Positions 6,160-59,348 of a stretch of DNA of 64,000 bases are shown here, piece after piece (within the stretch, counting starts at the first letter, position 1; each line of letters opens with the position of its first letter). The notes beneath the pieces were generated by a model. The model was not told the DNA's origin. It was given only the letters and a program-made list of their open reading frames with translations, and ran no database searches. This DNA is from Macrostomum hystrix (Eukaryota; Animalia; Platyhelminthes). The translations under genes and the position numbers were made by a program. Where the stretch lies: assembly GCA_950097015.1 (NCBI GenBank), contig CATNEN010000028.1, positions 558,001 to 622,000 on the forward strand, read 5' to 3'.

Positions 6160-8151
6160 ATGGCTTCAGCAAACACTAACAGTTCCGAATCAGAAAATTC
6201 AAAGCATAGAGAGCGAGATGAAGAAAAGAGAGTTAGAAGTACGCTGATAGCATTCGCTGCAAACACCTCAGCTCACGGCATTGGCAAGCTGATCTCTCCG
6301 CTCTGGTACGTTCAGGCATTGTGGCTTGTGCTCATCCTGGGAGCTTTGAGCTGCTTAGCTTATCACATGAGCACAATGATAGACAAGTTCCTCCAAGAGC
6401 CAGTGTCCACCTCCATCACCCTGCGTGGAGTCAGCTATATCTATCCTGGTGTCACGATCTGCAACAAGAAATTCCTGTCTGTGAGCGCAATGGCACAGAA
6501 GTCCAGTAAAACCTCTGGCGGCCCCGGTCCCCCGGATGCCATCAACGTCTCCGACCAGATTTGGTCCTGGACTGCAGTCTCGATTGACTTCTTCAAGAAG
6601 CTGAGGGGACTCAACGATCTCATCAACCAAGTCGGTCAAGCGAATCTGCAGAGAATGAATGCAGACGTAGCACTTTCTTCATCCAAATACCTGATGGAGA
6701 ATTACGACTTAAAGAGCAACTTGGCTCCCTTGACGCTTCGAGACACGGATGGCATGGCTAGTTTCACTGATTTCGGCCTGCACCCTAAGAAGCTGCTCAT
6801 CAGCTGCCGATTTGGTCCCAATGCATGCGACATCTCTGACTTCACCATTGGGCAGATGCATGACAATCCGTACTGCATCACATTTAACGTAAGCAGCGTT
6901 CAAGTTAAGAACGACCTCACAAGCAATGACGTCAACTCGTACCAATTGGAACTGTACTTCTACACAGACTCGAGCCAGTTCAATGCACAGAACTTGATAC
7001 CCGAGTTGCAGATCGGCTCCGATCCATTCTTTCACATGAACAGCAATGGTGGGGCCGACGTGTATGTTCACCATCCCGGCGCGTATCCGGGGACAGGCGA
7101 GAAGATCCAGGTCCCGAACGGCTTCGAGGCAAAAATCAGCGTCAACTACCAGGAGTTCCAATTTGTGAACATTTGGAAACGGCCGTGCCTCGACTCGTAT
7201 CCAGCTGACTCAATCGAATATTGGCAGAGCTCAACACCTGGCTCTGAAAGCAGCGCCACGTACGCCTTAACTAACAAGGATTGCTTCTACACGCTGCTTC
7301 AGTCTCGAATCTACGAGCGGTGCGGGTGTCTCTCGTACGACTATCCCGTGCCAAAAAAGCTTATGGGTAAAAAGGCCAACTTGTGCTTGAATATCACACA
7401 ATCTTACATAGAAGTGAACAGGAACACTACTCAGAGCTTGAATGTGTCTTCGGCTAATAATTTTATCGCTCAGATGGTGGCCACCGTAAGACAACGCAGG
7501 ACCGTCAGCTCCGACATTGAGGCAGCTCTGCTACGCATCCTTGATCTTTTTCGGTGCGAGCGCATCGCAATCGGTGCAAATTTAGTTAGAGCGGCTTCAG
7601 ACTGCACGGAGCGCTGCCACTCTTCTCAGTACACTACGCAGACCAACTTGTACACCTGGCCCAGCCAAAATCCCGACCTTTTATCCGGAGATCTGCTCAA
7701 GTGGCTCGATTCGAATGTCTACTATCGAAACAATGAAAGTGTTCTGAACCAGACGTTTGTGCGCGAAGTGAATCGCGGAATCTATGACATCCTGTCTCAG
7801 GTGAGAAGTCGCGGTGCGAGCGTCGGAACCAGCAACTTCTTGTCCATTCAGCTAAAAGCGGTAGACCAGTCCGGCAAAAGCACCATCATGGAGGAGTCTC
7901 TGTCCTACCAGTCATTCGACCTGCTCAGCGATATCGGTGGCATTCTCGGCCTGTACCTGGGCGTGTCCTTGCTGACACTGTGCGAGGTGATCGAGCTAGT
8001 GCTGGGCCTCCTCTACTTTGTTGTCTTAGAAATCAGAACACGGCGCTGGTCGCAGCAGCACCAGCAGCAGCACCAGCAGCAGCAGGCGCATAGACAGAAG
8101 AGAACAAATACTGGCGTAATCCAAGTGCAGCCAATGGTGGCTGAGGAGTAA
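6160..8151 (+). CDS. DEG/ENaC subunit, copy 2 (tandem paralog), intronless, 663 aa
   Basis: Same motifs (TSAHGIG, YPGVTICN, CGC, GVS filter). Collinear with 1075-3096 along its length. Confidence 0.95.
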   Translation: MASANTNSSESENSKHRERDEEKRVRSTLIAFAANTSAHGIGKLISPLWYVQALWLVLILGALSCLAYHMSTMIDKFLQEPVSTSITLRGVSYIYPGVTICNKKFLSVSAMAQKSSKTSGGPGPPDAINVSDQIWSWTAVSIDFFKKLRGLNDLINQVGQANLQRMNADVALSSSKYLMENYDLKSNLAPLTLRDTDGMASFTDFGLHPKKLLISCRFGPNACDISDFTIGQMHDNPYCITFNVSSVQVKNDLTSNDVNSYQLELYFYTDSSQFNAQNLIPELQIGSDPFFHMNSNGGADVYVHHPGAYPGTGEKIQVPNGFEAKISVNYQEFQFVNIWKRPCLDSYPADSIEYWQSSTPGSESSATYALTNKDCFYTLLQSRIYERCGCLSYDYPVPKKLMGKKANLCLNITQSYIEVNRNTTQSLNVSSANNFIAQMVATVRQRRTVSSDIEAALLRILDLFRCERIAIGANLVRAASDCTERCHSSQYTTQTNLYTWPSQNPDLLSGDLLKWLDSNVYYRNNESVLNQTFVREVNRGIYDILSQVRSRGASVGTSNFLSIQLKAVDQSGKSTIMEESLSYQSFDLLSDIGGILGLYLGVSLLTLCEVIELVLGLLYFVVLEIRTRRWSQQHQQQHQQQQAHRQKRTNTGVIQVQPMVAEE

Positions 8152-29770: not shown

Positions 29771-30034
29771 TGCAAATCTGCAGTTTCAAAGAAAAGGAAA
29801 CATCATAGCCGGCCCTCTACGAATTCAGATAATGAATTTTGCTTAAGCAAGACAGACTGACTGTGCAGTACGATGTCCTAATTTTTCGAGGCTAGGCAGG
29901 CAATATTAATTCTTATAAACAGGGCCTTTTGATCGAAAAAACTGGTATGAACCGCTTTTAATGCGAAACAAAATCTGATGAAATTAATTCCGCTGCGGGT
30001 GGATTATTTGCAGTTTGAAAAACTTTTCGCGAAA

Positions 30035-32314
30035 ATGCGTCAGATTTTGCTGATACCACTGCTGGCTATTGTGGCGTCTGCAAATGCTGCCAGCAAACAT
30101 CCGTCGCTGCCATTCTGGAATCCGACTCTCAACTGGGACGCGCGAGTTCGAGACCTGCTCAGCCGGCTGACAGACGACGAGCTGGTGGAGCAGTTGAGCA
30201 AAGGCGGCGCCGGAAAGAACGGCGGTCCCGCGCCGGCGGTGCCTCGCCTGGGCATCCGGCCTTACCAGTGGAACACCGAGTGCCTCAGCGGCTTCGGAGA
30301 GGCCGGCCCGGCCACATCGTTTCCCCAGGCTATCGGCCTGGCTGCCACCTTCAGCCCCGAACTGATTGAGGCTATGGCTCGAGCGACCGGTCTTGAAGTT
30401 CGAGCGGCTTTCAACGACTACTCAGCGGCTGGCAACTTCAGCGACCATCATGGCGTCACTTGCTTCGCTCCGGTCATCAACCTGCTGCGACATCCCTATT
30501 GGGGCCGCAACCAGGAGACCTACGGCGAGGATCCACACCTCACCGGCGTCCTTTCAGCTGCGTTCGTCCGCGGCCTGCAGGGTGGCGACCTGGCGACTAA
30601 CCGCTTCGCGCTGGCTGGCGCCGGCTGCAAACACTTCGCCGCGCACAGCGGCCCCGAAGACTATCCGGTGTCGCGCGTCTCCTTCAACGCAGTCGTGCCA
30701 GAGCAGGACCTGCGCCAGTCCTTTCTGCCGCAATTCCGCCGATGCCTTTCAGCCGGCAGCTTCTCTGTCATGTGCAGCTACAACGCGTTGAACGGCGTCC
30801 CGGCCTGCGCCAATCATCGCCTGCTGACGGACATTCTACGCGGCGAGTGGAACTTCACCGGCTACGTTGTCAGCGATGAGGGCGCGCTGGAGTTCGCTGT
30901 CGACTTTCACAAATACTTTGCTAACAGGTCAGTCGCCGCGATTGGCGCTTTCGAGGCAGGAGTCAATCTCGAACTGTCGCCGCCCGGCTGTCCGGACCAG
31001 GCGTGCATTGTGTTTGAGCATCTGCACGAAGCGGTGGCTTCCGGACGCATCAAGCGTCGCCAACTACTGGAGCGCGCTTATCCACTGTTTTACACTCGAA
31101 TGCGCCTGGGCGAGTTCGACCCGCCGGAAAGCAACCCCTACAGCCGGCTACACCAGGCGGACATTGTCCAGACGCCCGGACAGCGTCAACTATCTGCGGT
31201 CTTAGCGGCTGCCAGTTTCGTTTTGTTAAAGAACGCCGACGAGTTCCTGCCGCTGAGTGGCAACCAGATCATAGGCAGGCAGGTCGGCCTAATCGGCCCT
31301 TTCGCCGACAACATGACGCTCATGTACGGCTCGTATGCAGCCGATCCGATGCCGCAGTACCAGGTATCGCTGCTGTCCGGCCTAACTAAAGCTGGTGCCA
31401 TCGGTAGTGTTTATCGTTACTGCCTGGACGGTGTGCTGTGTCGGAGGCGCAACGATACGGCTTTGTCGGAGGCGGTGCAGAACAGCGACCTCCTGCTTGT
31501 CGCCGTGGGCACTGGTCAGCAAGTTGAAGCCGAGAACATCGACCGACGGAATCTCAGCCTGCCAGCTGGTCAGGATCGTCTAGTGCGCCTCCTGGCCGCA
31601 GGAAAAGGAAAATGGCCGCCGGCCGTTCTGCTGATCTTCTCCGGCGGACCGGTTGACATTCAACCGGCTGCCAGGCCGGATTCCGGAATTCGCGCCATCC
31701 TCTGGTGCGGCTTCCCGGCTCAGGAGGTTGGAGTGGCAGCGGCCGCCGTCCTGACTGGCGAATTATCACCATTCGCCAGCCTGCCATTTACCTGGTACTC
31801 GCCAGACCAGGCGCTGGCCTCCATAACCAACTACACGCTGACGAACATGACCTATCGCTTCCTGGAGGATCCACCGTCAGGCAAGGGACCTCGCCCGCTA
31901 TACCGGTTCGGTCAGGGCCTAGCGTTCTCCGCCTGTCGAGTGCATCTCACCGATCTGGAGGCTCCCGACCGACTGCCACGCGGAGAAAATCTTGACGTGG
32001 CATTCAGCGCCAGCGTATTTGGCGACTCCGCTGGTCGCTACCGCGGCTGCATGTACTCAGCCAAGGCGTACTTGAAGCCAACTGGCGTTCGTGTTGGTCG
32101 CAATCCGCGTATTTGGCTGGCCGCCGTGAGCCTGGTTGCCTGGCGGGAGGACAAGCGACAGCGAGTGTACATGCGGCTACTGGCCGAGGACATGGAGCAG
32201 TGGAGCGGGAGCCGCATGGCTGTACTGGCCGGAGAGTATGAGCTGCATATAGGAGATTACTTCGATGAAAAGTGCTCCGATTGTCGGCTCGTTAAGAAAT
32301 TTGTTATCGTTTGA
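30035..32314 (+). CDS. Secreted glycoside hydrolase family 3 beta-xylosidase/beta-glucosidase, intronless
   Basis: Signal peptide MRQILLIPLLAIVASANA. GH3 motifs WGRNQETYGEDP, CKHF, VMCSYN, nucleophile motif VVSDEG, EAENIDR, and a C-terminal Fn3-like region. The track ORF begins at 29978; the Met at 30035 fits the signal peptide. Confidence 0.93.
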   Translation: MRQILLIPLLAIVASANAASKHPSLPFWNPTLNWDARVRDLLSRLTDDELVEQLSKGGAGKNGGPAPAVPRLGIRPYQWNTECLSGFGEAGPATSFPQAIGLAATFSPELIEAMARATGLEVRAAFNDYSAAGNFSDHHGVTCFAPVINLLRHPYWGRNQETYGEDPHLTGVLSAAFVRGLQGGDLATNRFALAGAGCKHFAAHSGPEDYPVSRVSFNAVVPEQDLRQSFLPQFRRCLSAGSFSVMCSYNALNGVPACANHRLLTDILRGEWNFTGYVVSDEGALEFAVDFHKYFANRSVAAIGAFEAGVNLELSPPGCPDQACIVFEHLHEAVASGRIKRRQLLERAYPLFYTRMRLGEFDPPESNPYSRLHQADIVQTPGQRQLSAVLAAASFVLLKNADEFLPLSGNQIIGRQVGLIGPFADNMTLMYGSYAADPMPQYQVSLLSGLTKAGAIGSVYRYCLDGVLCRRRNDTALSEAVQNSDLLLVAVGTGQQVEAENIDRRNLSLPAGQDRLVRLLAAGKGKWPPAVLLIFSGGPVDIQPAARPDSGIRAILWCGFPAQEVGVAAAAVLTGELSPFASLPFTWYSPDQALASITNYTLTNMTYRFLEDPPSGKGPRPLYRFGQGLAFSACRVHLTDLEAPDRLPRGENLDVAFSASVFGDSAGRYRGCMYSAKAYLKPTGVRVGRNPRIWLAAVSLVAWREDKRQRVYMRLLAEDMEQWSGSRMAVLAGEYELHIGDYFDEKCSDCRLVKKFVIV

Positions 32315-44801: not shown

Positions 44802-47800
44802 ATGCTCGCGTTCAGCAGTTCAGGCGGCCAGGCGGCGGCTGCTGCGGCAGCTGCTACCCAGAGGCAGCTGTTAGCCATGGTTCGTACGCCTCCAGCGTCA
44901 GAGTCACAATCGGGTCAGTCTCAGCAGCAACTGGCGCTCGCCACTGCCGGGCAGATGTCTATGCCGCCGCCTCCAGCGCCGAAGCTACTGGATTACGGAA
45001 TGGCTTCACCCGGCGAGGGCTTCGACCTGATGACTGGCCTGGACGCGGCGACTCTGTTCGCAATGTCCGCCGTGGCGACTCCGATGACAACGTCGGTAGC
45101 GGCTGCCGCGGCTGCGGCCGCTGCCGCAGCTTCAGCGGCTGCAGCTGCAGCCTCTTCGTCGTCCGCATCGGGGCATCAGTCCGCTCTTCCAGTGGGCTTC
45201 TACACTGAGTGAGTTTGGCCTCCTTAATTATTTTACCTGCTATGAATTCGCTTACCTTCATTGATAAGGTATCTTCTTCTCCCCCTCATCTTCTTCTCCC
45301 CCTCATCTTCTTCTCCCCCTCATCTTCTTCTCCCCTTCATCTTCTTCTCCCCTTGATCTTCTTCTCTCCCTCTTCTTATTCTCCCCCTCATCTTCTTCTC
45401 TCCTTCTTTTTCTTCTCTCCCTCATCTTTTTATCCATAGTTTTTTTCTTCACTCGTATTCTCCCCCTCCTCATATTCTCCTCCCCCTCATCATCTTCTGC
45501 CCTTCATCTTCTTCTCTCCATCATCCCTCATTCCTTACATGTAAAAATACAGGACAATCAAAGGAGCCAATATCTAAGCAAACATGTAAAAGTCCTTACT
45601 CAAAAACAAGTTAAACGTCTTTTCATTTATTTGGTCTAAATAGAATTATAAAATTTTGGATAAAATTTACGATTAATGAAGAAAACAAAATCTCGGCACG
45701 CTGCCCTGCACCTTTTTGCTAGTTATTTCCTCTCAACAAAGCTCGAATTTATCTGTGATTTACTGCTGCGCTGCCTGCGCAGTTTGTCCTTTTTCTGTCT
45801 CCCTCCACCATCCAGCCACCTCATTGTGCCCAGTTCGGCCTGGCGGTCTGGCCCACTCATTATCGGCAGCGAATGCGCAGATATCATCTGGGCTAGCGCT
45901 GCCCAGCAGGTGAATGTCTGTTATGTCTGGCTGTGTCTGTTTTGTGTGGCTGTGTCTGTTCTGTCTGGCTGTGTCTGTTCTGTCTGGCTGTGTCTGTTCT
46001 GTCTGGCTGTGTCTGTTCTGTCTGGCTGTGTCTGTTTTGTGTGGCCTGTGTCTGTTCTGTCTGGCTGTGTCTGTTCTGTCTGGCTGTGTCTGTTCTGTCT
46101 GGCTGTGTCTGTTCTGTCAAGCTGTGTCTGTTTTGTCTGGCTGTGTCTGTTTTGTGTGGCTGTGTCTGTTCTGTCTGGCTGTGTCTTTTCTGTGTGGCTG
46201 TATCTGTTCTGTCTGGCTCTGTCTGTTCTGTCTGGCTGTGTCTGTTTTGTCTGACTCTGTCTGTTATGTCTGGCTGTGTCTGTTCTGTCTGACTGTGTCT
46301 GTTCTGTCTGGCTGTGTCTGTTTTGTGTGGCTGTGTCTGTTTTGTCTGGCTGTGTCTGTTTTGTGTGGCCTGTGTCTGTTCTGTCTGGTTGTGTCTGTTC
46401 TGTCAAGCTGTGTCTGTTCTGTCTGGCTGTGTCTGTTTTGTGTGGCTGTGTCTGTTTTGTGTGGCTGTGTCTGTTCTGTCTGACTGTGTCTGTTCTGTCT
46501 GGCTGTGTCTGTTTTGTGTGGCTGTGTCTGTTTTGTGTGGCTGTGTCTGTTCTGTCTGGCTGTGTCTGTTCTGTCTGGCTGTGTCTGTTTTGTGTGGCTG
46601 TGTCTGTTTTGTGTGGCTGTGTCTGTTTTGTGTGACTGTGTCTGTTTTGTGTGGCTGTGTCTGTTCTGTCTGGCTGTGTCTGTTCTGTCAAGCTGTGTCT
46701 GTTCTGTCTGGTTGTGTCTGTTCTGTCAAGCTGTGTCTGTTCTGTCTGGCTGTGTCTGTTTTGTGTGGCTGTGTCTGTTTTGTGTGGCTGTGTCTGTTTT
46801 GTGTGGCTGTGTCTGTTTTGTGTGACTGTGTCTGTTTTGTGTGGCTGTGTCTGTTCTGTCTGGCTGTGTCTGTTCTGTCAAGCTGTGTCTGTTCTGTCTG
46901 GCTGTGTCTGTTTTGTGTGGCTGTGTCTGTTCTGTCTGGCTGTGTCTGTTTTGTGTGGCCTGTGTCTGTTCTGTCTGGCTGTGTCTGTTCTGTCAAGCTG
47001 TGTCTGTTCTGTCTGGCTGTGTCTGTTCTGTGTGGCTGTGTCTGTTCTGTCTGGCTTTGTCTGTTCTGTCTGGCTGTGTCTGTTTTGTGTGGCTGTGTCT
47101 GTTTTGTGTGGCTGTGTCTGTTTTGTGTGGCTGTGTCTGTTTTGTGTGGCTGTGTCTGTTTTGTGTGGCTGTGTCTGTTTTGTGTGGCTGTGTCTGTTTT
47201 GTGTGGCTGTGTCTGTTTTGTGTGGCTGTGTCTGTTCTGTCTGGCTGTGTCTGTTTTGTGTGGCCTGTGTCTGTTTTGTGTGGCCTGTGTCTGTTCTGTC
47301 TGGTTGTCTCTGTTCTGTCAAGCTGTGTCTGTTCTGTCTGGCTGTGTCTGTTTTGTGTGGCTGTGTCTGTTCTGTCTGGCTGTGTCTGTTCTGTCTGGCT
47401 GTGTCTGTTCTGTGTGGCTGTGTCTGTTCTGTCTGGCTTTGTCTGTTCTGTCTGGCTGTGTCTGTTTTGTGTGGCTGTGTCTGTTTTGTGTGGCTGTGTC
47501 TGTTTTGTGTGGCTGTGTCTGTTTTGTGTGGCTGTGTCTGTTTTGTGTGGCTGTGTCTGTTTTGTGTGGCTGTGTCTGTTTTGTGTGGCTGTGTCTGTTC
47601 TGTCTGGCTGTGTCTGTTTTGTGTGGCCTGTGTCTGTTCTGTCTGGTTGTGTCTGTTCTGTCAAGCTGTGTCTGTTCTGTCTGGCTGTGTCTGTTTTGTG
47701 TGGCCTGTGTCTGTTCTGTCTGGCTGTGTCTGTTTTGTGTGGCTGTGTCTGTTTTGTGTGGCTGTATCTGTTCTGTCTGGCTGTGTCTGTTCTGTATGGC

Positions 47801-50800
47801 TGTGTCTGTTCTGTCTGGCTGTGTCTGTTCTGTGTGGCTGTGTCTGTTCTGTCTGGCTTTGTCTGTTCTGTCTGGCTGTGTCTGTTTTGTGTGGCTGTGT
47901 CTGTTTTGTGTGGCTGTGTCTGTTTTGTGTGGCTGTGTCTGTTTTGTGTGGCTGTGTCTGTTTTGTGTGGCTGTGTCTGTTTTGTGTGGCTGTGTCTGTT
48001 CTGTCTGGCTCTGTCTGTTCTGTATGGCTGTGTCTGTTCTGTCTGACTGTGTCTGTTTTGTGTGGCTGTGTCTGTTCTGTCTGGCTGTGTCTGTTCTGTC
48101 TGGCTGTGTCTGATCTGTCTGGCTGTGTCTGTTCTGTCAAGCTGTGTCTGTTTTGTGTGGCTGTGTCTGTTTTGTCTGACTGTGTCTGTTCTGTCTGACT
48201 GTGTCTGTTCTGTCTGGCTGTGTCTGTTTTGTGTGGCTGTGCCTGTTTTGTGTGGCTGTGTCTGCTCTGTCTGGCTGTGTCTGTTCTGTCTGGCTGTGTC
48301 TGTTTTGTGTGGCTGTGTCTGTTTTGTGTGGCCTGTGTCTGTTCTGTCTGGCTGTGTCTGTTTTGTGTGGCTGTGTCTGTTTTGTGTGGCTGTGTCTGTT
48401 TTGTGTGGCTGGGTCTGTTTTGTGTGGCTGTGTCTGCTCTGTCTGGCTGTGTCTGTTCTGTCTGGCTGTGTCGGTTTTGTGTGGCTGTGTCTGTTTTGTG
48501 TGGCTGTGTCTGTTCTGTCTGGCTGTGTCTGTTTTGTGTGGCTGTGTCTGTTTTGTGTGGCTGTGTCTGTTTTGTGTGGCTGGGTCTGTTTTGTGTGGCT
48601 GTGTCTGTTCTGTCTGGCTGTGTCTGTTCTGTCAAGCTGTGTCTGTTCTGTCTGGCTGTGTCTGTTCTGTCAAGCTGTGTCTGTTCTATCTGGCTGTGTC
48701 TGTTCTGTCAAGCTGTGTCTGTTCTGTCTGGCTGTGTCTGTTCTGTCAAGCTGTGTCTGTTCTGTCTGGCTGTGTCTGTTCTGTCAAGCTGTGTCTGTTC
48801 TGTCTGGCTGTGTCTGTACTGACAGGTGGTACCTGCACTGCTAACAATGCGATCGCTGACTGCTCGCGTTGCTAAGGATTTCTGGTATAATTTAGCTAAA
48901 TTCTGCAATATACTCAAGAATGTAATCTGATAGACTCAGGATAATGTAAAATAATCCAGTTTTTCGGTCTGACAAAAGGGGCAACGCCCATAGCTAAAAC
49001 GCATCTTGGAAAATGCGTTTTAAAGGTAATTTTCCTTCTTGAAGTCATCAGATACGCATTGAAAATATTGTCAACAAATTTAAAATCCTATGGCTTAATG
49101 CCTTGTTTTTCATGACTTATCTGCTCCATGCCGTCTCCTAAAAGCAGCGAACTATATACACCCGTGGTTTACAATTGAAAACATTGGTGCAACTTACATG
49201 CCTAATATAGGAATAAATTCTCATTGGCTGCAGCCACCGCCAAATAAACAAAACGCCATTAACCCTCGACCTCAAACTATCACATTGTTTAATTTCTTTG
49301 AAGACACCACTTAACCTTCATTAGTTCCATTCCTTTAAACAAAACACCTCTATCCTCACTTCACCCACCTCACTCCCTCGCAAATTACCATTTCGCTTAT
49401 TTACCCACCCCCATCCCCTGCCAGTTTAATTCAGTCCATTCCCCACATCAATCCCGAAGTTTTATTGACTTTAACAAACCCCTCCCCACCAGTTTCAATC
49501 TTCTAAACCACCACCTCCCTCCCCACCAATTCCTATCCTTTTACCACCACGTCCCTCCCTACCAATTACTATCCTTTTTTCCGTCACCTACCTCCTAACC
49601 AATTCCTTTCCTTTTTACCACCACTTCCATCCCCACCAATTCCTATCCTTTTTACCACCACCTCCCTCCCCGCCAATTCATATCCTTTTTACCACCACCT
49701 CCGTCCCCGCCAATTCCTATACTTTTTACCACCACCTCCCTCCCCGCCAATTCCTATCCTTTTTACCACCACCTCCCTCCCCGCCAATTCCTATACTTTT
49801 TACCACCACCTCCCTCCCCGCCAATTCCTACCCTTTTTACCACCACCTCCCTCCCCGCCAATTCCTATCCTTTTTACCACCACCTCCCTCAAACGGCTAA
49901 TTCCTACCCTTTTAACAGCCACATCCCTCGCAGCCAACTCTTATTGTTAAAACCATCACCTCCCTCCCCAATTCCTATCGTTTAAATCACCACCTACCTA
50001 CCCCGCCAACTCTATCCTGTAAACCACAAACTCCCTTCCCTCGCTGATTATATTCCTCCAAGTCCATTCGCTATATTCCCTCGCCAACTATTTTTTCTGA
50101 TTGAAGCTTATCCAAGCTAAATATAACAACCTAACACCCGCCTCAGCCGAGAAATTCGCGAAAAGTGGGACACTGAATTCTTGCGTCAGCGTTGTCACCT
50201 AATCGCCGCTTTGAGCCGCAGCCTTGAATACTTCACGGAGGGCATCCTGTGGAATGAGTCCACGTCTGGCCTGGGACTCATGGACGACGCTATGGAGGCG
50301 AGAATTCGCGCTCTGACAGACGGCCTGCCGCCGCAGGGCAGCTACGGCAGCATGTGGCACACGCCGACTCCCCTGACCCAGCAGGTCCTGGTGCCGCAGC
50401 TGCTGCCGCACGCTAATCTGGTTGTGCAACAGTCGCTGCTAATCCAACTTTCAATTATTGGCTATTCCTTCTACGATGGGGCCAAAGTGCGCTTCAGGTG
50501 TTCGGTAAGCTCACCTGGCTCAGTGAATTATGTTGCCAGCCTAGTCACTAAGCAATTAGTAAGTACTAGTTGATGACTGCAGAACACAGGGAGAGTGAAA
50601 CGTATTCGTAAGAATAGTGAAAATAAAACTAGGAGAAGGAGATCTGTAAGGATAGGGGATAGAGTTGGAGGGACAAGGAGTGAGGTGGGTGAGGGTAGGC
50701 GATGGAGTTGGAGGGACAGGGAGTGAGGTGGGTGAGGGTAGGCGATGGAGTTGGAGGGACAGGGAGTGAGGTGGGTGAGGGTAGGCGATGGAGTTGGAGG

Positions 50801-53800
50801 GACAGGGAGTGAGGTGGGTGACGCTAGGCGATGGAGTTGGAGGGCAGGAAGTGAGGTGGGTGACGCTAGACGATGGAATTCGAGGGACAGGGAGTGAGGT
50901 GGGTGACGCTAGACGATGGAGTTGGAGGGACAGGGAGTGAGGTGGGTGACGCTAGACGATGGAGTTCGAGGGGCAGGGAGTGAGGTGGGTGACGCTAGGC
51001 GATGGAGTTGGAGGGACAAGGAGTGAGGTGGGTGAGGCAAGGCAATGGAATGGGATGGCAGGGAGTGAGGTGGGTGACGCTAGGCGATGGAGTTGGAGGG
51101 ACAGGGAGTGAGGTGGGTGAGGCAAGGCAATGGAATGGGATGGCAGGGAGTGAGGTGGGTGACGCTAGGCGATGGAGTTGGAGGGACAGGGAGTGAGGTG
51201 GTTGAGGGTAGGCGATGGAGTTGGAGGGACAAGGAGTGAGGTGGGTGAGGGTAGGCGATGGAGTTGGAGGGACAAGGAGTGAGGTGGGTGAGGGTAGGCG
51301 ATGGAGTTGGAGGGACAAGGAGTGAGGTGGGTGAGGGTAGGCGATGGAGTTGGAGGGACAGGGAGTCAGGTGGGTGAGGGTAGGCGATGGAGTTGGAGGG
51401 ACAAGGAGTGAGGTGGGTGAGGGTAGGCGATGGAGTGAGACTGACAGGGAGTGGGGTGCGTAAAGGCATAGAAGAGGGAGGTCATGATGGGTATAAAGTT
51501 AATGAGTGAGAAAAAATATATAGTGCTTGCCTTCTAATTAAACTCATTATCGAATAAGCGAGTTTATTGAATTCACAGGAAAAATGTTATTTTCACAATG
51601 AGTTGATGAAATACTGCATCGAGGAACCACAAATTGACCCAGGTTACTGTAGGAAAATTCCAAATTAAACCCTATTTTGTATTTTTTTTCTATCCCATTG
51701 TTAACTGCTTATAAAACAGCAACTTCTAAGCGGCTTCCGCACAATTTTTAGGAATTTGCTGAGGCTGAAAATGAAAGGTAAACGGAGGCATTTTTCTTTT
51801 GATTAACTAACAGGGAAATAGACGCAGAAAAAAGCTCAGAAATGGTTTTTTATTGTTTAACACCTGAACTTACGAAGCTCCTGGCTCCTTCGTAGCCAGA
51901 TTTAGAATTATTTTATTTTACTCTGGACACATTTATCTCGCCCTTCCAAATTACTTCTTCCTTTTCTGTTCAACAATGAGACGAAGCATGGAAGTTACTC
52001 TATGCAATTCAACTTTTAAATCTATCGGCCTATTCTACTCAATTATATAAAGGACATGTTACTGTTCGATGTTTTCTAGACTTTAATTTCACACAACTGG
52101 TCACTCCTCATTTTATTAACCATAAAAATGCATCTGCTATTTGTATGGTCATTATTTGTATGAATTGCAGCAGGAGTCGTCGCTAGAATCGCAGCAAGTG
52201 TAGTCGCTAGAATCGCAGCAGGAGTCGTAGCTAGAATCGCAGCAAGAGTTGTAGCTAGAATCGCAGCAGGAGTCGTAGCTAGAATCGCAGCAGGAGTCGT
52301 AGCTAGAATCGCAGCAGGAGTCGTAGCTAGAATCGCAGCAGGAGTCGTAGCTAGAATCGCAGCAAGAGTTGTAGCTAGAATCGCAGCAGGAGTCGTAGCT
52401 AGAATCGCAGCAAGAGTCGTTGCTAGAATCGCAGCAGGAGTTGTAGCTAGAATCGCAGCAAGTGTTGTCGCTAGAATCTCAGCAGGAGTCGTAGCTAGAA
52501 TCGCAGCAAGTGTTGTCGCTAGAATCTCAGCAGGAGTCGTAGCTAGAATCGCAGCAAGTGTTGTCGCTAGAATCGCAGCAGGAGTCGTAGCTAGAATCGC
52601 AGCAAGAGTTGTAGCTAGAATCGCAGCAGGAGTCGTAGCTAGAATCGCAGCAGGAGTCGTAGCTAGAATCGCAGCAGGAGTCGTAGCTAGAATCGCAGCT
52701 AGAGTTGTAGCTAGAATCGCAGCAGGAGTCGTAGCTAGAATCGCAGCAGGAGTCGTAGCTAGAATCGCAGCAGGAGTCGTAGCTAGAATCGCAGCAGGAG
52801 TCGTAGCTAGAATCGCAGCAAGAGTTGTAGCTAGAATCGCAGCAGGAGTCGTAGCTAGAATCGCAGCAGGAGTCGTCGCTAGAATCGCAGCAAGAGTCGT
52901 CGCTAGAATCGCAGCTAGAGTTGTAGCTAGAATCGCAGCAGGAGTCGTAGCTAGAATCGCAGCAGGAGTCGTAGCTAGAATCGCAGCAGGAGTCGTCGCT
53001 AGAATCGCAGCAAGAGTCGTCGCTAGAATCGCAGCAGGAGTCGTCGCTAGAATCGCAGCAAGAGTCATGGCTAGAATCGCAGCAGGTATCGTAGCTAGAA
53101 TCGTAGCAAGAGTCGTCGCTAGAATCTCAGCTGGAATGGTATCTAGAATCGTAGCTGGAATCGTATCTAGAATCGCAGCTGGAATGGTATCTAGAATCGT
53201 AGCTGGAATCGTATCTAGAATCGCAGCTGGAATGGTATCTAGAATCGCAGCAGGAGTCCGTGCGAAAATGTGGAAAATGTGTCGCAGTCTCGTTAATTGT
53301 TACTAATTGTCATTTGAGCAGCTAACGAGGCATATAAGTTTACAAGCGTTATGCTTGTTCTAAAAGCAAAGCAAAGGGCGCCATCATGTTGCAATTAATT
53401 ACTAAGGGCCTCTCCGTCTTCATGGCGACAGGGGCGGCTTACTTGGGCTGTCTCGCTCGTGTTTATTTACGCAGGCAGCATTGAGATATGCTGGACTATT
53501 GGTCTATCCGTTCGGAAACATTTTTAGTGCATTGAAAGCAAAGTTAAATTATCCAAATTTATATATTTGGTTCTTCGAATATTGTTCGCAAAATGAATTT
53601 TTTAAATGCCTTTTTGAAAAAAACTAATTCGTGGTTAGGTAATCTGAGTAATGTCAGGGGGCGCTAATGGGGCACAAAGGGAGCGCCAACCACCCTATTA
53701 GGGGCGCCAACCACCCTAATAGGGGCGCCAACCACCCTATTATGGGCGCCAACCACCCTATTATGGGCGCCAACCACCCTATTAGGGGCACCAACCACCC

Positions 53801-54979
53801 TATTAGGGGCGCCAACCATCCTATTAGGGGCGCCAACCACCCTAATAGGGGCGCCAACCACCCTATTAGGGGCGCCAACCACCCTATTAGGGGCGCCAAC
53901 CACCCTATTTGGGGCGCCAACCACCCTAATAGGGGCGCCAACCACCCTATTAGGGTCGCCAACCACCCTATTAGGGGCGCCAACTACCCTATTAGGGGCG
54001 CCAACCACCCTAATAGGGGCGCCAACCACCCTATTATGGGCGCCAACCACCCTATTATGGGCGCCAACCACCCTATTAGGGGCACCAACCACCCTATTAG
54101 GGGCGCCAACCATCCTATTAGGGGCGCCAACCACCCTAATAGGGGCGCCAACCACCCTATTAGGGGCGCCAACCACCCTATTAGGGGCGCCAACCACCCT
54201 ATTTGGGGCGCCAACCACCCTAATAGGGGCGCCAACCACCCTATTAGGGTCGCCAACCACCCTATTAGGGGCGCCAACTACCCTAATAGGGGTGCCAACC
54301 ACCCTAATAGGGGCGCCAACTACCTTAATAGGGGCGCCAACCACCCTAATAGGGGCGCCAACCACCCAGCTACACCAGTCAACGCTTGAGGGGCGCCATA
54401 AATTTATGACCAAAATTTAGGGGGGGGTTAAATCCGCCCCTGTGTTTTGCACGTTTTAATTATCCTAAAAATATCGTTTTACAGCAATGCCCCAAAGAAT
54501 GGACCTCGATGAAGGGCCGCATTGTTTTCCACCTGTTCCGCCTGGAGGGCGCCACGCCTCTGCTGGACCCCCAAACCAGCGAGGTGCTGCTGCCGCGCGG
54601 CTACAGCCTGTTCTTCCGGCTGTTCAAGCAGCAGTGCCATGAGACCAAGGGTCACCGGCAGGGGGAGCACACCGTGTTCGAGGAGCCGCAGTGGTACCCG
54701 GAGGAGATCGAAAAGGTTAGTAAACCTAGTGACTTCCATAGGCAAGATTTGTCAGCGCCCGAACCTCACTGCAAAGACGAAGAGGACCAAAATTTTCAGG
54801 TGCTGTACAACGTGTTCTGGCGCATCGGCCAGACCCTCTACAAGGTGAGCATCGGTGACAAGACTGTCCAGATGTGGCGCAGGGCTGGCAATCCAAGCCA
54901 GAAGCACGACAAGAGCAGCTGCCAGGCCTGTCAGCAGGGCTTCTGCCAGGGCAAGTCGGCGGCTTCCACCGGGAATTGA
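44802..54979 (+). CDS. RTP-type 3CxxC zinc-finger protein with an Ala/Gln-rich N-terminus, 6 exons, about 442 aa
   Basis: Exons 44802-45208, 45816-45909, 48826-48884, 50147-50504, 54485-54715, 54800-54979. Phases 2,0,2,0,0 are consistent and sum to 1329 nt. The C-terminus [53 protein letters not shown] matches the zf-3CxxC pattern. The link to the 5' exons is less certain. Confidence 0.75.
45255..45530. repeat. CT-rich low-complexity repeat (CTTCTTCTCCCCCTCAT-like), intronic
   Basis: Degenerate 17-18-bp units. Confidence 0.8.
45915..48820. repeat. 19-bp compound minisatellite (GCTGTGTCTGTTCTGTCTG and variants) filling an intron
   Basis: About 2.9 kb; explains all the Cys/Val-rich ORFs here. 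Confidence 0.97.
49540..49900. repeat. 37-bp minisatellite (CCACCACCTCCCTCCCCGCCAATTCCTATCCTTTTTA)
   Basis: TCCCCGCC recurs at 49741 and 49778. Confidence 0.9.
50660..51450. repeat. 43-bp G-rich minisatellite
   Basis: GATGGAGTTG recurs at 50701 and 50744. Confidence 0.93.
52160..53255 (-). repeat. 12-bp-based satellite family C, locus 2 (24-bp unit GCAGGAGTCGTAGCTAGAATCGCA)
   Basis: Reverse complement of the units at loci 1 and 3. Confidence 0.95.
53655..54442. mobile_element. MITE-like element with an internal 21-bp satellite (GGGGCGCCAACCACCCTATTA)
   Basis: Ends CAGGGGGCG ... CGCCCCTG, with TGT on both flanks. The internal array spans about 53680-54365 and includes a 294-bp higher-order duplication. 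Confidence 0.5.
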
Positions 54980-55040: not shown

Positions 55041-56130
55041 CGTAACATGACTACATCCTAGACAAAGGAATTTTCCATCTGAGGATTGTGCAAAATAAAA
55101 AACGGGCGTCGGACAGTTTTTAGTGTTCTGAATGCTGAATAAGTTTCCATGTAAAATACTGAAATGGTGATTGGTCAATAGCTGATCGTTAGGGCTGTGA
55201 TTGATAGCAATGAGGGGCTCATTAAGTTTTTCCCGCTTTTGCCTTTCCTAAGTGATACAGGCTTTTTATTTCTTTTAAAGCAAATTTGCGTTAAATTAAA
55301 ATGACTGTAGATTTGTTTCTTGCGGCAAAGTCAGCGCACTTTTACATAGTTTTATAGTTTTTATGTTGAATCCAATTTATTTATTTGACCGCTCACTCTT
55401 AGAAATTCACGCTCAGTAACCAAACACGCAGAATTCAACATCGTAACAAAAAGCGACGCATATTCTCATTACTACTTATAATGCTCAACAGTAGTGTAGA
55501 AAGGATACTACTAAAAGTTATTTTAGGTTAAAGAAATACAATATCTCATGATCTTTGATCTGTGTTGAATTTGCTTCGTTGTGCAGTCTCGCTTTCCTGT
55601 TGTGTGTGTGTTTTTTAGAAAATTTATTCGTGGTGTTGGCTTGCTCTGCAACTCTGCCATTCCCTGTATTCTCTGTCTATCAATCTTTGGTTCTTGATTT
55701 ATTTAATTCACATTTTTACCAGCCTAGTCGCCCAGAATTGAAGCTATAAGTCCTTCTGAAGTAACTTCTGAAAATAAACTTGTTTTATTGAGTGCGAAAT
55801 TAGCAACTTCGAGTAGGTTAAAATTCTTACTGGCTGTGACAAAATTGAAATGAAATATTTTTATCTGACCTGCTGTCCTTTGCTTATGACTCTGTCTCAT
55901 TGATTGTGCGAATAGTGCTTCTGTATAACATCAGGAACACATTAACTTTCGGACCAAAGCAAAAATGATAGTGAGACTACACGAGAGAGAACGAGAGAGA
56001 ACGAGACAAAACGAGAGAGAATGAGAGAGAAAGGGAGAGAGAGGGAGAGAGGGAGAGAGAGAGAGGGAGAGAGGACACTGCCCATTGAATTTCAAAAATC
56101 TAATGTTGGAATCGATTCCGATATGTATCG

Positions 56131-56240
56131 AAAAAATTGAAATCAGGATTCGAACCAAGGCAAGTCCAGACGCGTTTCGCTCTTATTGGAGCTCATCAGT
56201 AGAGTCTAGCCTAGCGCTCTAGCCATTAGGCTATAGGCGC
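56131..56240 (-). mobile_element. tRNA-derived SINE-like Pol III unit carrying the hammerhead
   Basis: A box TAGCCTAATGG (56233-56223), B box GGTTCGAATCC (56156-56146), T6 run at 56136-56131. The acceptor stem does not pair, so this is not a functional tRNA. Confidence 0.75.
56159..56211 (-). ncRNA. Type I hammerhead ribozyme (minimal stem III)
   Basis: The minus strand reads GGCTAGAC TCTA CTGATGA GCTC caataa GAGC GAAA C GC GTC TGGA CTTGCC. This gives the full core, a 4-bp stem II, a palindromic ACGCGT stem III, a GUC cleavage triplet (C at 56169), and stem I TCTA/TGGA extended by GGCTAG/CTTGCC. Confidence 0.88.
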
Positions 56241-57357
56241 TTGTTCAAATCCAGCCTTCAATCTCAACATATCGTAATCGATTCGGCAGCGCCCCGCAAC
56301 TCAATCCATACTCACTCAACTCCGTGGCACTGACTCGGTCGTACGAGACGCCGGTGCTGGCCTGAGAAAGAGGGAGAGAGGGAGAGAGAGAGTGGGAGAG
56401 AGGAGAGAGGACACTGCCCAAAAACGAGTGAGAGTGAGAGAGAAAGGGAGAGAGGGAGAGAGAACGAGAGAGAACGAGACAAAACGAGAGAGAACGAGAC
56501 AAAACGAGAGAGAACGAGACAGAACAGGAGAGAACGAGAGAGAACGAGAGAGAACAAGAGAAAACGAGAGAGGTAAATGAATAAACGAGAACACTCTAAG
56601 GTCTGTGCAGAACCCAAAATAAACAAATAACCAGTGAAGTCGCAGCCATCAGCTGTCATTTCACGTAAAAAATGCGGATCTAAATTGTCGAGCAGCTTCT
56701 GGTGCTATAGTTGATCTCCTTACACACAACACTGCGCCTCTATTTGACATAATGAAAAACGCCAGAAATAGCAATCAGTAACAGCAAACTACGAGCTAGT
56801 TCGTGACAAAGTGCGGGTGTAATACTTATTCGGTTCAAATATTTGAATAGAATAGTTCTAAACTAGATATCAACAAAGGACAAACAGCGAGACTGAAATT
56901 GTTTTAATGGAGCCTAAACAGATACAATTAAACTACAATCAAAGTGTAACAAAGTTAAAAGCGAATGGCATTTAAAAACCGGATCTAGAAACTAAAAATA
57001 GATTTTACATGTAGATAGACACTGTAGATGTTTGGTCCTCTGGGATCGTTTGAATTGATTCAAGTGAAAGGAGAGACGAATAAGAACTGCTTGAATAAAG
57101 ACAGATTCTGGTCGAGTTAAACGTGTCGCAAATTAAATGAAATTAAGAATACTTAAGCGAAATAAACAAAATACAAAAAGGCGTCTCTACAGGATTCTAA
57201 GAGACTATTCTTCAACACGATGCAACTATCATAGCTAAAGGAAAGACAAACAACTGCAAGCAAATAAGAATGAATGAAAAAGACTGAATAGCGAAAGTTA
57301 ATCAAAGTGCAAATTTACTATTTAGTGAACCGGAGCAGCACACAAACACACAAGCAG

Positions 57358-58437
57358 CTAGTTAAGTCTTCCCCAGCCATCAGAGGCCGTATCAAATATG
57401 TAGTTCTCGCCAAAATTATTATCCCAGAATGTCTGGCCGCTGGTGCAATAGGAGATACAGAATGCAACGCGGGCTGAACTGCCAGCAGCGGCCAGCTCTG
57501 ATACCGTCAGACAGAAGCTGAACTGGTCCGTCACGCCGTTACTTGAGTCAGGAACGTACGCTGCTGCAATGTCCACGCTGGTACGCCAATTGTCGAATGT
57601 GACTTTCAGTGTAACGCACTTTTCAAAGGCCATATTGGCTACGCGAATGTAGCCGCGAATTTCTCGGCTAGCCGGCGCGTAGGACGCCGTCTCCAACACA
57701 ACCTTCTGGGCCATGACTCGGGCGTTGAAGCCTGCTGCATGACCCGGCTGGGAGAATGTTGGTCGCAGGACAATGGCCTGCCGCCGCTGCTGAGCATCGC
57801 CGCCCAGAGCTGCAGTGCTTGCTGGCTCGTCGCTATCCTCACTGCCTGTCTGGTCGCCTAGCTCCAAGTCTCTCGTGGCCTGCGGCGGAATTTCCGGCGG
57901 ACTCTCGGGATCCAGGACGTGCTTCACGTTGGCCAGATCTAGGCCGAACGCGTCAGCGAATCTAACGGCCTTTTTAACCAACGTCGGTGTGCCTGGCGGA
58001 GTCTTCTTCGACTTCAGTGATGAAGATCGCTTGTTCAGTGGGCGCACACTCAGCAGGATTTCATCCTGGCCATTGCTGGCCTCTGTAGGAATGGCACCTT
58101 CGGTCACTGCGGCGACTGTTCGCCCGACAGCCCGCTCGTGTGCCTCGAAGAAGTTCGCCGGGCCGTGTCGAGCCCCGCTCAGCTCAGCTAGAGCCAGGGA
58201 CAGGCTATCGACGCTGCCGCGGCTGGCTGATGAATGGTCATGGCCGGCGACTTCCTCCAGTGACGGCGGGTCGAGCATGACCACTGTGAGCGGAGACGAC
58301 GGACCTCTGCGGCGTCGATCTCTTGGACTGTGCGGCTGCTGCTGTGGAAGCAGTTGTTGATGTTGCTGTTGTTGCTGCTGCTGCTGCTTTTTCTTAGCCA
58401 CGACATTATTGCCGCCGTTCTCTGATGGGCCAGACAT
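57358..58437 (-). CDS. PPP1R3: Protein phosphatase 1 glycogen-targeting regulatory subunit (CBM21), intronless, 359 aa
   Basis: PP1-docking RVxF-type motif KAVRFAD. CBM21 motifs VVLE, IRGYIRVANMAFEK, TFDNW, DQFSF, FWDNNFGENY. Confidence 0.92.
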   Translation of the reverse strand: MSGPSENGGNNVVAKKKQQQQQQQQHQQLLPQQQPHSPRDRRRRGPSSPLTVVMLDPPSLEEVAGHDHSSASRGSVDSLSLALAELSGARHGPANFFEAHERAVGRTVAAVTEGAIPTEASNGQDEILLSVRPLNKRSSSLKSKKTPPGTPTLVKKAVRFADAFGLDLANVKHVLDPESPPEIPPQATRDLELGDQTGSEDSDEPASTAALGGDAQQRRQAIVLRPTFSQPGHAAGFNARVMAQKVVLETASYAPASREIRGYIRVANMAFEKCVTLKVTFDNWRTSVDIAAAYVPDSSNGVTDQFSFCLTVSELAAAGSSARVAFCISYCTSGQTFWDNNFGENYIFDTASDGWGRLN

Positions 58438-58849
58438 GACCAATTCAGGCCGTCACCACTCTCTTAACTTATCACTTTCTATAGATTTTTAGAGGCTCCT
58501 TTATTAACTTTTTAGCTGCAGTACCGGCCTAACCCAGATCGGGCATGCCGCTTCCTTGAATCCAGGATCTGAAAGCATTCCAATAAAAATTAAATTTTTT
58601 TTGAACTCTTCAATTTAGACTTTTAAGTCACTCTGGATGAATCATTATAAGCCATAGACATATTATTAGAGAATTTTAGTATCTACCTATGAAAATGATA
58701 AACAGTACCAATCTTTCAATAGTAGCTATTTTAATCATTTTGGCCATAGACTAGAGAAATCTACTGAAATACATTCTACAAGAGGGCTCAGGTTAAGATT
58801 TATTGAAAGACATGATTTTAACTCCAAAACTTGCCAACCATTCAAGAGT

Positions 58850-59348
58850 GTTGCTACGACTATGCTAGCCAAGATTCCATCTACGATTCCATCTACGATT
58901 CCATCTACGATTCCATCTACGATTCCATCTACGATTCCATCTACGATTCCATCTACGATTCCATCTACGATTCCATCTACGATTCCATCTACGATTCCAT
59001 CTACGATTCCATCTACGATTCCATCTACGATTCCATCTACGATTCCATCTACGATTCCAGCTGCAATTCTAGATAGGATTCCAGTTGCGATTCTAGATAC
59101 GATTCCAGTTGCGATTCTAGATACTATTCCAGCTGCGATTCTAGATACGATTCCAGCTGCGATTCTAGATACGATACCAGCTGCGATTCTAGATACTATT
59201 CCAGCTGCGATTCTAGATACTATTCCAGCTGCGATTCTAGATACTATTCCAGCTGCGATTCTAGATACTATTCCAGCTGCGATTCTAGATACTATTCCAG
59301 CTGCGATTCTAGATGCAATACCAGCTGCGATTCTAGATACTATTCCAG
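58850..59348 (+). repeat. 12-bp-based satellite family C, locus 3 (CCATCTACGATT array, then a 24-bp unit)
   Basis: A pure 12-mer run followed by CCAGCTGCGATTCTAGATACTATT. Confidence 0.95.

Follow-up and report, generated by a model that had tools for sequence, protein, structure and literature searches.

Hammerhead-bearing repeats are widespread and poorly understood mobile elements of animals, and the way in which they are transcribed is an open question. The described systems include the Schistosoma retroposons Sm-alpha and Sj-alpha, which resemble short interspersed nuclear elements (SINEs) and were reportedly described by Ferbeyre et al. in 1998 and Laha et al. in 2000, and the minimal hammerheads of Penelope-like terminal repeats, which are said to go back to Lunse et al. 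in 2017. A canonical metazoan type I hammerhead has a helix I of ~6 bp, a helix II of 4 bp and a palindromic loop on a helix III of 1-2 bp, and such ribozymes work as dimers if another copy lies nearby (PMC4209133). Non-long-terminal-repeat (non-LTR) retrozymes are 170-400 nt long, have a GC content below 50%, are highly self-paired and co-occur with Penelope-like elements (Cervera and de la Pena, 2020, PMC7229834). Their expression yields circular RNA, with circularization by an RtcB-type ligase (PMC7229834; bioRxiv 10.64898/2026.07.22.740005), and metazoan retrozymes seem, according to a review, to be without promoters (PMC7761336). Sm-alpha and Sj-alpha are tRNA-derived, SINE-like repeats of ~330 bp that are promoted by RNA polymerase III (Pol III) and carry a canonical hammerhead; their copy number ranges from thousands to tens of thousands, and their propagation depends on tandem copies (PMC2770079, PMC2576457, PMC6765202). 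The layout of Sm-alpha is described as "a promoter followed by a hammerhead" (PMC6765202), and tRNAscan sees a contiguous tRNA-Gln-like part in it (PMC2770079). Here, a hammerhead-bearing repeat is described from 64,000 nt of Macrostomum hystrix DNA (hereafter the window), in which the ribozyme appears to be nested inside a split Pol III-type promoter, a layout that differs from those of both Sm-alpha and the retrozymes.

The locus is probably a solitary copy of a non-coding retroelement of ~336 bp, young and present in great abundance, that belongs to the metazoan non-LTR retrozyme or Sm-alpha kind; the copy comprises ~1.2 units. It contains a cassette on the minus strand that reads, from 56240 to 56131, A box, hammerhead, B box and a run of six T residues (T6). 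The tRNA-like 5' part consists of a G at 56240, then U8-A9, and then the A box TAGCCTAATGG (56233 to 56223), which covers tRNA positions 8-18, agrees with TRGCNNAGTGG at 10 of 11 positions and starts 7 nt past the G, as in tRNA numbering. This region resembles the D arm of tRNA-Arg, and we take it to be Arg-like. The B box GGTTCGAATCC (56156 to 56146) is a perfect match, separated from the A box by 66 nt. T6 (56136 to 56131), a candidate Pol III terminator, lies 9 nt past the B box, and a further run of five T residues (T5) is found at 56098 to 56094. An earlier note on this DNA had claimed both consensus boxes, a T6 about 10 nt downstream and a complete type I hammerhead in the place of the anticodon arm, and all of these were found again on the minus strand.

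The hammerhead was delimited to 56157-56213 by an Rfam match, manual numbering and folding energies. Its core strand CUGAUGA (56199 to 56193) is followed by a 4-bp helix II, GCUC/GAGC (56192-56189 paired with 56182-56179), which is closed by the 6-nt loop CAAUAA, and then by the core residues GAA (56178-56176). The conserved core is complete, comprising C3, U4, G5, A6, N7, G8, A9, G12, A13, A14, the pair A15.1-U16.1 and C17 (56199-56193, 56178-56175, 56170-56169). Helix III is represented by the loop-less palindrome ACGCGU (56175 to 56170). From the position of GUC relative to the core, self-cleavage is predicted between 56169 and 56168, after C17 and before U1.1. Helix I consists of an inner part (56206-56200 paired with 56168-56162), which has 7 bp in the family consensus, and an outer part of 4 bp (56212-56209 paired with 56161-56158), the two being separated by a UA bulge at 56208-56207. 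By these features the ribozyme would be classed as a canonical metazoan type I hammerhead with a dimer-type helix III, and cleavage is predicted.

An Rfam run over the whole window at gathering thresholds gave no match. Hammerhead_HH9 (RF02275, clan CL00010) matches 56150-56214 on the minus strand with 32.8 bits (E 2.7e-6 in 801 nt and 4.8e-7 in 141 nt), and two relatives of the same clan score lower. Over the core, helix II GCUC/GAGC, loop 2, GAAAC and GUC, 25 of 26 positions are identical with the HH9 consensus, and the outer helix I part GGC/GCC also aligns. The score falls short of the gathering score of 52 because the helix III loop is absent and helix I is shorter, which together cost ~19 bits. 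The 26-nt core string occurs once in the window and has 0 matches in shuffled sequences even when 3 mismatches are allowed. The B box pattern has its sole match in the 64 kb here, with 0.39 expected, whereas the A-box pattern has 4 matches in the window against 2.1 expected, which is no enrichment; the boxes are therefore meaningful only in combination. A tRNA identity of the cassette was considered and rejected. ARAGORN gave no tRNA with default settings, with introns allowed or after ~400 in-silico excisions of the ribozyme, and at low thresholds it gave spurious calls only; the Rfam tRNA model had no match at E up to 10 in 141 nt, and no cloverleaf is detectable.

The extent and abundance of the repeat were read from contigs (Logan) of four public runs, placed on 55700-57500. 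Run X7 is DNA of the same organism, X10 is labelled as RNA and has unique flanks that are ~99% identical, and X1 behaves like RNA. Contig ends in these data are branch points of the assembly graph and are uninformative on RNA ends. In X7, word depth is 75-87 (~80) in the single-copy flanks and rises to 6,834 in the bin 56066-56126, 29,000 in 56127-56187, 9,359 in 56188-56248, 3,828 in 56249-56309 and 4,349 in 56310-56370, these being summed contig depths, which are not equal to true copy numbers. The repeated sequence spans at least 56080 to 56370 at 45-350x single-copy depth, exceeding the cassette by over 120 nt upstream of the A box and by 50 nt past T6, and high-depth contigs (56080-56184, 56204-56283 and 56216-56301) link the hammerhead to both sides. 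This depth means many tens to hundreds of near-identical copies. The compact 110-nt unit that the earlier note had drawn around the cassette is abandoned, since the repeat is much wider and RNA-like contigs pass both T6 and the A box.

The length of the unit is indicated by GAGAGGACACTGCCC, which occurs at ~56070-56084 and again at 56406-56420, 336 bp apart. From this spacing, the depth and the significance of the fold, one unit can be placed at 56085-56420 on the minus strand with approximate ends (336 nt, GC 0.49). It has no coding capacity, lies within the 170-400 nt and <50% GC of retrozymes, and is ordered as GGGCAGTGTCC plus a TC-rich stretch, a body, the A box-hammerhead-B box cassette and a tail. 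A second, partial copy of the unit's 5' part (GGGCAGTGTCC plus the TC-rich stretch, ~60 nt), recognized by its sequence, follows the full unit at 56022-56084 on the same strand, and the insert thus amounts to ~1.2 units. Position 56080 was considered as an edge of the repeat and rejected as an artefact: 56017-56079 and 56362-56474 fit two places in the contig placement and were hence skipped as internal repeats. The insert is located in an intergenic GA-rich microsatellite ~1.1 kb downstream of a PPP1R3-type gene and ends in the TC-rich stretch, not at the ribozyme site. It is flanked by an exact direct repeat of 39 nt (55983-56021, identical with 56456-56494), which may be either a long target-site duplication or pre-existing microsatellite.

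A second copy, whole or partial, was not found in the 64-kb window with the core string and self-BLAST. A family-specific pattern had no match in collections of genome contigs or viral contigs, and the broad pattern CTGATGA..CGAAAC..B box found 8 loci in metagenome contigs, all of them unrelated chance or foreign motifs. In metagenome contig Ga0307509_10028837 (L002:4724-4782), CTGATGA, a 6-bp helix II (GCCCTT..AAGGGC) and CGAAAC occur in this order, with the tRNA-like GGGTTCGATTCC less than 30 nt further on, and this could be another, unrelated hammerhead beside a tRNA-like T arm in an environmental genome.

The copy at this locus appears to be young, because over ~280 nt only two positions, 56164 and 56256, deviate from the family majority (~0.7% from the consensus). 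The first of these is a private substitution on the minus strand, C in place of the family's G, and it breaks the fifth pair of helix I. G is present here in all 14 X7 contigs and in one contig each of X1 and X10; in the consensus it pairs with C 56204 to give a continuous inner helix I of 7 bp, whereas the locus copy has a C-C mismatch. The statement of the earlier note that all core positions are intact therefore holds for the core but not for helix I. Apart from 56164, no variant reaches 10% among the family contigs in the ribozyme, the boxes or T6. The core and stems are thus, as judged from the contigs, conserved across the family, as the earlier note had expected of homologous copies. 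One 619-nt contig of X7, at single-copy depth, matches 56080-56172 and then continues into unrelated sequence with a reverse-oriented tRNA T-arm GGGAATCGAACCC, and its switch point is the exact center of the helix III palindrome (ACG|CGT). It may be a recombinant or template-switch product from a family copy elsewhere in the genome.

The palindromic helix III has a structural consequence. A single hammerhead cannot close the three-way junction because this helix has no loop; closure in the monomer as one A-U pair would cost +5.7 kcal/mol. In the predictions helices I and II form, and helix III forms only between two ribozymes. For the locus copy, the minimum free energy (MFE) is -12.7 kcal/mol for the monomer, -25.4 for two monomers and -30.2 for the dimer, and a double hammerhead with swapped helix I strands and a 6-bp intermolecular helix III has -26.7. 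The corresponding values for the consensus are -16.9, -33.8, -39.6 and -39.1 kcal/mol. The consensus double hammerhead is accordingly only 0.5 kcal/mol above the dimer MFE and 5.3 better than two monomers, and the locus copy is clearly worse. Folding thus favors, for the family consensus, a double-hammerhead dimer in the model used.

The RNA of the whole unit is also predicted to be strongly paired. The 336-nt unit folds linearly at -121.4 kcal/mol (z -4.4 against shuffles), and a permuted version that begins at the cleavage site reaches, in a circular fold, -116.9 kcal/mol with 68% of the bases paired (z -4.9). Self-BLAST and the fold identify an inner inverted repeat whose arms, 56267-56284 (5') and 56109-56126 (3'), pair at 17 of 18 positions. 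In both the linear and the circular folds, the antisense-B-box-like stretch GGCTGGATTTGAAC (56246-56258, minus strand) is the partner of the B box region, and this pairing makes one long closed hairpin of the cassette; it and the pairing of the 18-bp arms are nested around the cassette. At 56246-56258 on the plus strand, ARAGORN reports a weak tRNA-like shape at a relaxed threshold. The A box lies within a near-perfect hairpin of its own (56241-56213).

Evidence of transcription comes from X10 and X1. X10 has a 157-nt contig over 56131-56287 at a depth of 11; it also covers the gene region 56816-57500 and has zero depth on unique intergenic sequence. In X1, depth is 50.8 from 56679 to 57500, which comprises the start of the PPP1R3-type gene region (57358-58443) and sequence downstream of that gene, 0 on intergenic sequence and 5-21 on the element, where contigs extend over 56080-56193 (through T6) and 56165-56279 (beginning upstream of the A box). 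The X1 contig ends at 56165 and 56193 were considered as RNA ends and rejected, as they are k-mer overlaps around the 56164 variant. A further X1 contig joins 56204 directly to 56250 and hence lacks 56205-56249, that is, the A-box hairpin and the outer helix I strand; it is best explained as a subfamily or deletion variant without the A box. Because the RNA-like contigs cross T6 and start upstream of the A box, longer transcripts exist, and RNA of the family is therefore longer than the 110-nt cassette. A role of the element in the 3' end of the PPP1R3-like gene was rejected, since the RNA-like contig of this gene ends at 56679, ~440 nt before the element.

Among the closest known systems is Sm-alpha, with which the family shares a non-coding, highly repeated unit of ~330 bp that combines tRNA-derived A and B boxes with a type I hammerhead. 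The ribozymes are alike in their 4-bp helix II, 6-nt loop 2, bulged helix I and weak helix III, and in both cases a copy on its own is expected to be crippled, tandem copies being required. Helix II and its loop read GUCC-CAAAUA-GGAC in the Sm-alpha ribozyme, which differs from the hammerhead described here. The promoter lies upstream of the ribozyme in Sm-alpha, according to secondary descriptions, whereas in the present family the A and B boxes enclose the ribozyme, which takes the place of the anticodon arm, and here no tRNA fold is detectable. The host sequence also differs from that of schistosomes, with a GC content of 0.46 and long intronless genes.

The retrozymes resemble the family in their canonical type I hammerhead, unit size, GC content, lack of coding capacity and strongly self-paired predicted RNA. 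An insert of more than one unit and possibly long target duplications are further points of likeness, and co-occurrence with Penelope-like elements is a reported retrozyme trait; no Penelope-like element with a minimal hammerhead was found in the 64-kb window. Retrozymes form tandem arrays without recognizable promoters, whereas consensus Pol III boxes and a T-run surround the ribozyme here and the locus carries a single ribozyme. The palindromic, dimer-type helix III and the likeness to Sm-alpha and the retrozymes bear out what the earlier note had recognized. The best Rfam relative, HH9, works as a monomer; it is found in amniotes as an intronic ribozyme in single copy, and its 3-bp helix III carries a loop, in contrast to the loop-less helix III and shorter helix I of the present ribozyme. 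The minimal hammerhead of Penelope-like elements (PMC4209133) is similar in its palindromic helix III, action as a dimer and association with retroelements, but in this variant helix II is longer and one more nucleotide follows position 9, and its identity with the present ribozyme was rejected on account of the canonical 4-bp helix II without an extra nucleotide in a non-coding unit. tRNA-derived SINEs share the A and B boxes, the lack of coding capacity and the high copy number. In the present unit, by contrast, at least 120 nt of repeat lie upstream of the A box, so that its tRNA-like part does not form the 5' end, and the unit has internal T6 and T5 runs, no LINE-like (long interspersed nuclear element) or A-rich tail and no cloverleaf. 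The reading as a tRNA-headed SINE is not supported, because a Pol III transcript that starts from a tRNA head cannot carry the upstream part.

The most likely life cycle of the family, as a retroelement of the retrozyme or Sm-alpha kind, would begin with transcripts longer than the 110-nt cassette, at which the RNA-like contigs hint. Such RNA is predicted to be a rod with a high degree of pairing, the hammerhead lying close to one of its tips. Two hammerheads, in tandem units or in two separate transcripts, would then pair ACGCGU with ACGCGU and swap helix I strands to form a double hammerhead, as the energies suggest and as is known for this ribozyme class. By analogy with published work on retrozymes, the unit-length RNA may be circularized by a host RtcB-type ligase. 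A reverse transcriptase acting in trans, probably of a Penelope-like element, may copy the circular or multimeric RNA, which would give inserts of more than one unit, and an insert that ends in a TC-rich stretch within a GA-rich target would agree with priming by microhomology. Conserved across the family, the A box, B box and T6 probably represent a Pol III promoter of the internal type and its terminator, both derived from a tRNA; they might drive a side product of ~110 nt or start transcription into downstream units. Since the ribozyme lies between the boxes, cleavage would separate them, and the promoter would be whole only in circular or tandem copies. The copy at the present locus is most likely inert there, because it has one ribozyme, no partner in 64 kb and the private helix I mismatch.

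Several observations weigh against assigning the locus to such a retroelement. The HH9 score remains below the gathering score, and abundance is derived from summed contig depth rather than true copy number. The family contigs are too uniform for covariation, and a single copy is available as sequence. The boundaries of the unit and the target-site duplication are ambiguous, both ends lying in GA/TC microsatellite, and the tandem arrangement typical of retrozymes is not seen at the locus, where a single ribozyme stands in ~1.2 units. Finally, the internal T6 and T5 would stop Pol III short of the full unit, and the boxes therefore have at most a putative role in propagation.

In an alternative explanation, the locus is a retrozyme-type repeat whose boxes are dead relics of a tRNA or serve simply as pairing partners in the rod, and whose transcription is solely by read-through from Pol II units nearby, as has been proposed for other metazoan retrozymes. 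The apparent lack of promoters in metazoan retrozymes (PMC7761336) would agree with this, as would the incompatibility of T6 and T5 with full-length Pol III synthesis and the A-box-less variant among the RNA-like contigs; the B box, which pairs with 56246-56258, and the A box in its hairpin could both be kept for RNA structure. Structure alone is, however, unlikely to retain consensus boxes in the correct order, spacing and strand together with a terminator where a tRNA gene would end, and Sm-alpha, the precedent, is reported to be transcribed by Pol III (PMC6765202). On balance, dead boxes appear unlikely.

A further proposal, doubtful to a similar degree, is that the family is a SINE-retrozyme hybrid in which the hammerhead has replaced the anticodon arm of a tRNA gene and Pol III makes a tRNA-shaped RNA of ~110 nt from a promoter split by the ribozyme. 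If this were true, self-cleavage would take place at the position of tRNA-intron removal and leave 2',3'-cyclic phosphate and 5'-OH ends of the kind joined by the tRNA-splicing ligase RtcB. The RNA of the element would then feed the host tRNA-splicing and ligation pathway for circularization or trans-ligation, with the promoter regenerated in circular or tandem copies only. Metazoan retrozymes would gain both a promoter and a dedicated ligase route, neither of which, to our knowledge, has been recognized for them at present.

A stand-alone Pol III small RNA gene would need only the cassette: TFIIIC would bind the A and B boxes, transcription would start near 56240-56245 and stop at T6, and the RNA of ~110 nt would dimerize through ACGCGU and cut itself into pieces of ~75 nt and ~38 nt, the surrounding repeat being incidental. 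The boxes, their spacing and a T-run at the position of a tRNA gene's end would fit a type 2 Pol III unit: the B box is perfect, the A box matches at 10 of 11 positions at a tRNA-like distance from a G at +1, the spacing is 66 nt and T6 comes 9 nt on. The boxes and T6 are invariant among the family contigs at the 10% level, the X10 contig stops exactly at 56131, the last T of the run, and standard RNA-seq would under-sample an RNA of 110 nt. Yet that contig end may be a graph branch point, other RNA-like contigs pass T6 and begin upstream of the predicted start, and one expressed variant skips 56205-56249 and with it the A-box hairpin. Together with the co-amplification of over 120 nt on the upstream side of the cassette and 50 nt on its downstream side, and with the loss of any tRNA-like fold, this makes a small RNA gene quite unlikely.

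A miniature inverted-repeat DNA transposon of ~176 bp (56109-56284), with the cassette between terminal inverted repeats of 18 bp, is suggested by the inverted repeat that brackets the cassette (17 of 18 positions). The arms are nevertheless internal elements of RNA structure and not transposon termini, because depth continues past both of them; high-copy depth and contigs extend to 56080-56108 and 56285-56370, no short target-site duplication abuts the arms, and the reading, which is very improbable, was rejected. That the hammerhead and promoter boxes are a chance resemblance, as the sub-threshold Rfam score and the lack of enrichment of the A-box pattern by itself might suggest, is hardly conceivable and already effectively refuted by the HH9 match (E ~1e-6 to 1e-7, in agreement with the consensus at 25 of 26 positions of the core, helix II and loop 2), by shuffles without a match and by contig depth that shows the sequence amplified hundreds-fold with an invariant core.

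Sm-alpha is, as far as is known, the one hammerhead-bearing repeat with Pol III boxes, and the present family would be a second, differently organized example. It is a clean test case for the question of whether retrozyme RNA is driven by Pol III, and whether a promoter that is split by self-cleavage enforces circular or tandem propagation. The locus itself is ordinary, with nothing to suggest a host function, and the split-promoter layout of the family is of moderate interest.

The genes in the window, which make up an invertebrate-like gene content, encode DEG/ENaC channels, the PPP1R3-type glycogen-targeting subunit and a glycoside hydrolase family 3 (GH3) enzyme. The DEG/ENaC genes (amiloride-sensitive sodium channels) are two paralogues of 673 and 663 aa that lie in tandem at 1075-3096 and 6160-8151 and apparently have no introns, and for which a word-based homology search gave no relative at E 1e-20 or better. 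The intronless GH3 gene (29978-32314, 778 aa) forms a GC-rich island of 0.61 in surroundings of ~0.46; its nearest Atlas clusters are from molluscs and Bacteroidota, and it may be an old horizontal acquisition. At 55885-55943 there is a sub-threshold Rfam match to conserved region 2 of Drosophila hsr-omega (14.4 bits, E 3.3), which is almost certainly due to chance. A very large minisatellite at 45915-48821 consists of ~153 repeats of the 19-mer TGTCTGTTCTGTCTGGCTG, which match at 91%; A is nearly absent from its plus strand (AT skew -0.95), and it contains many overlapping spurious open reading frames. Arrays of one 24-mer occur in opposite orientation at 52042-53258 and 58765-59348, with arms of ~490 nt that are 77% complementary and separated by 5.6-6 kb. 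Between these arrays lie the PPP1R3-like gene and a 21-mer array (53678-54367) as well as the hammerhead repeat, and the arrangement is foldback-like.

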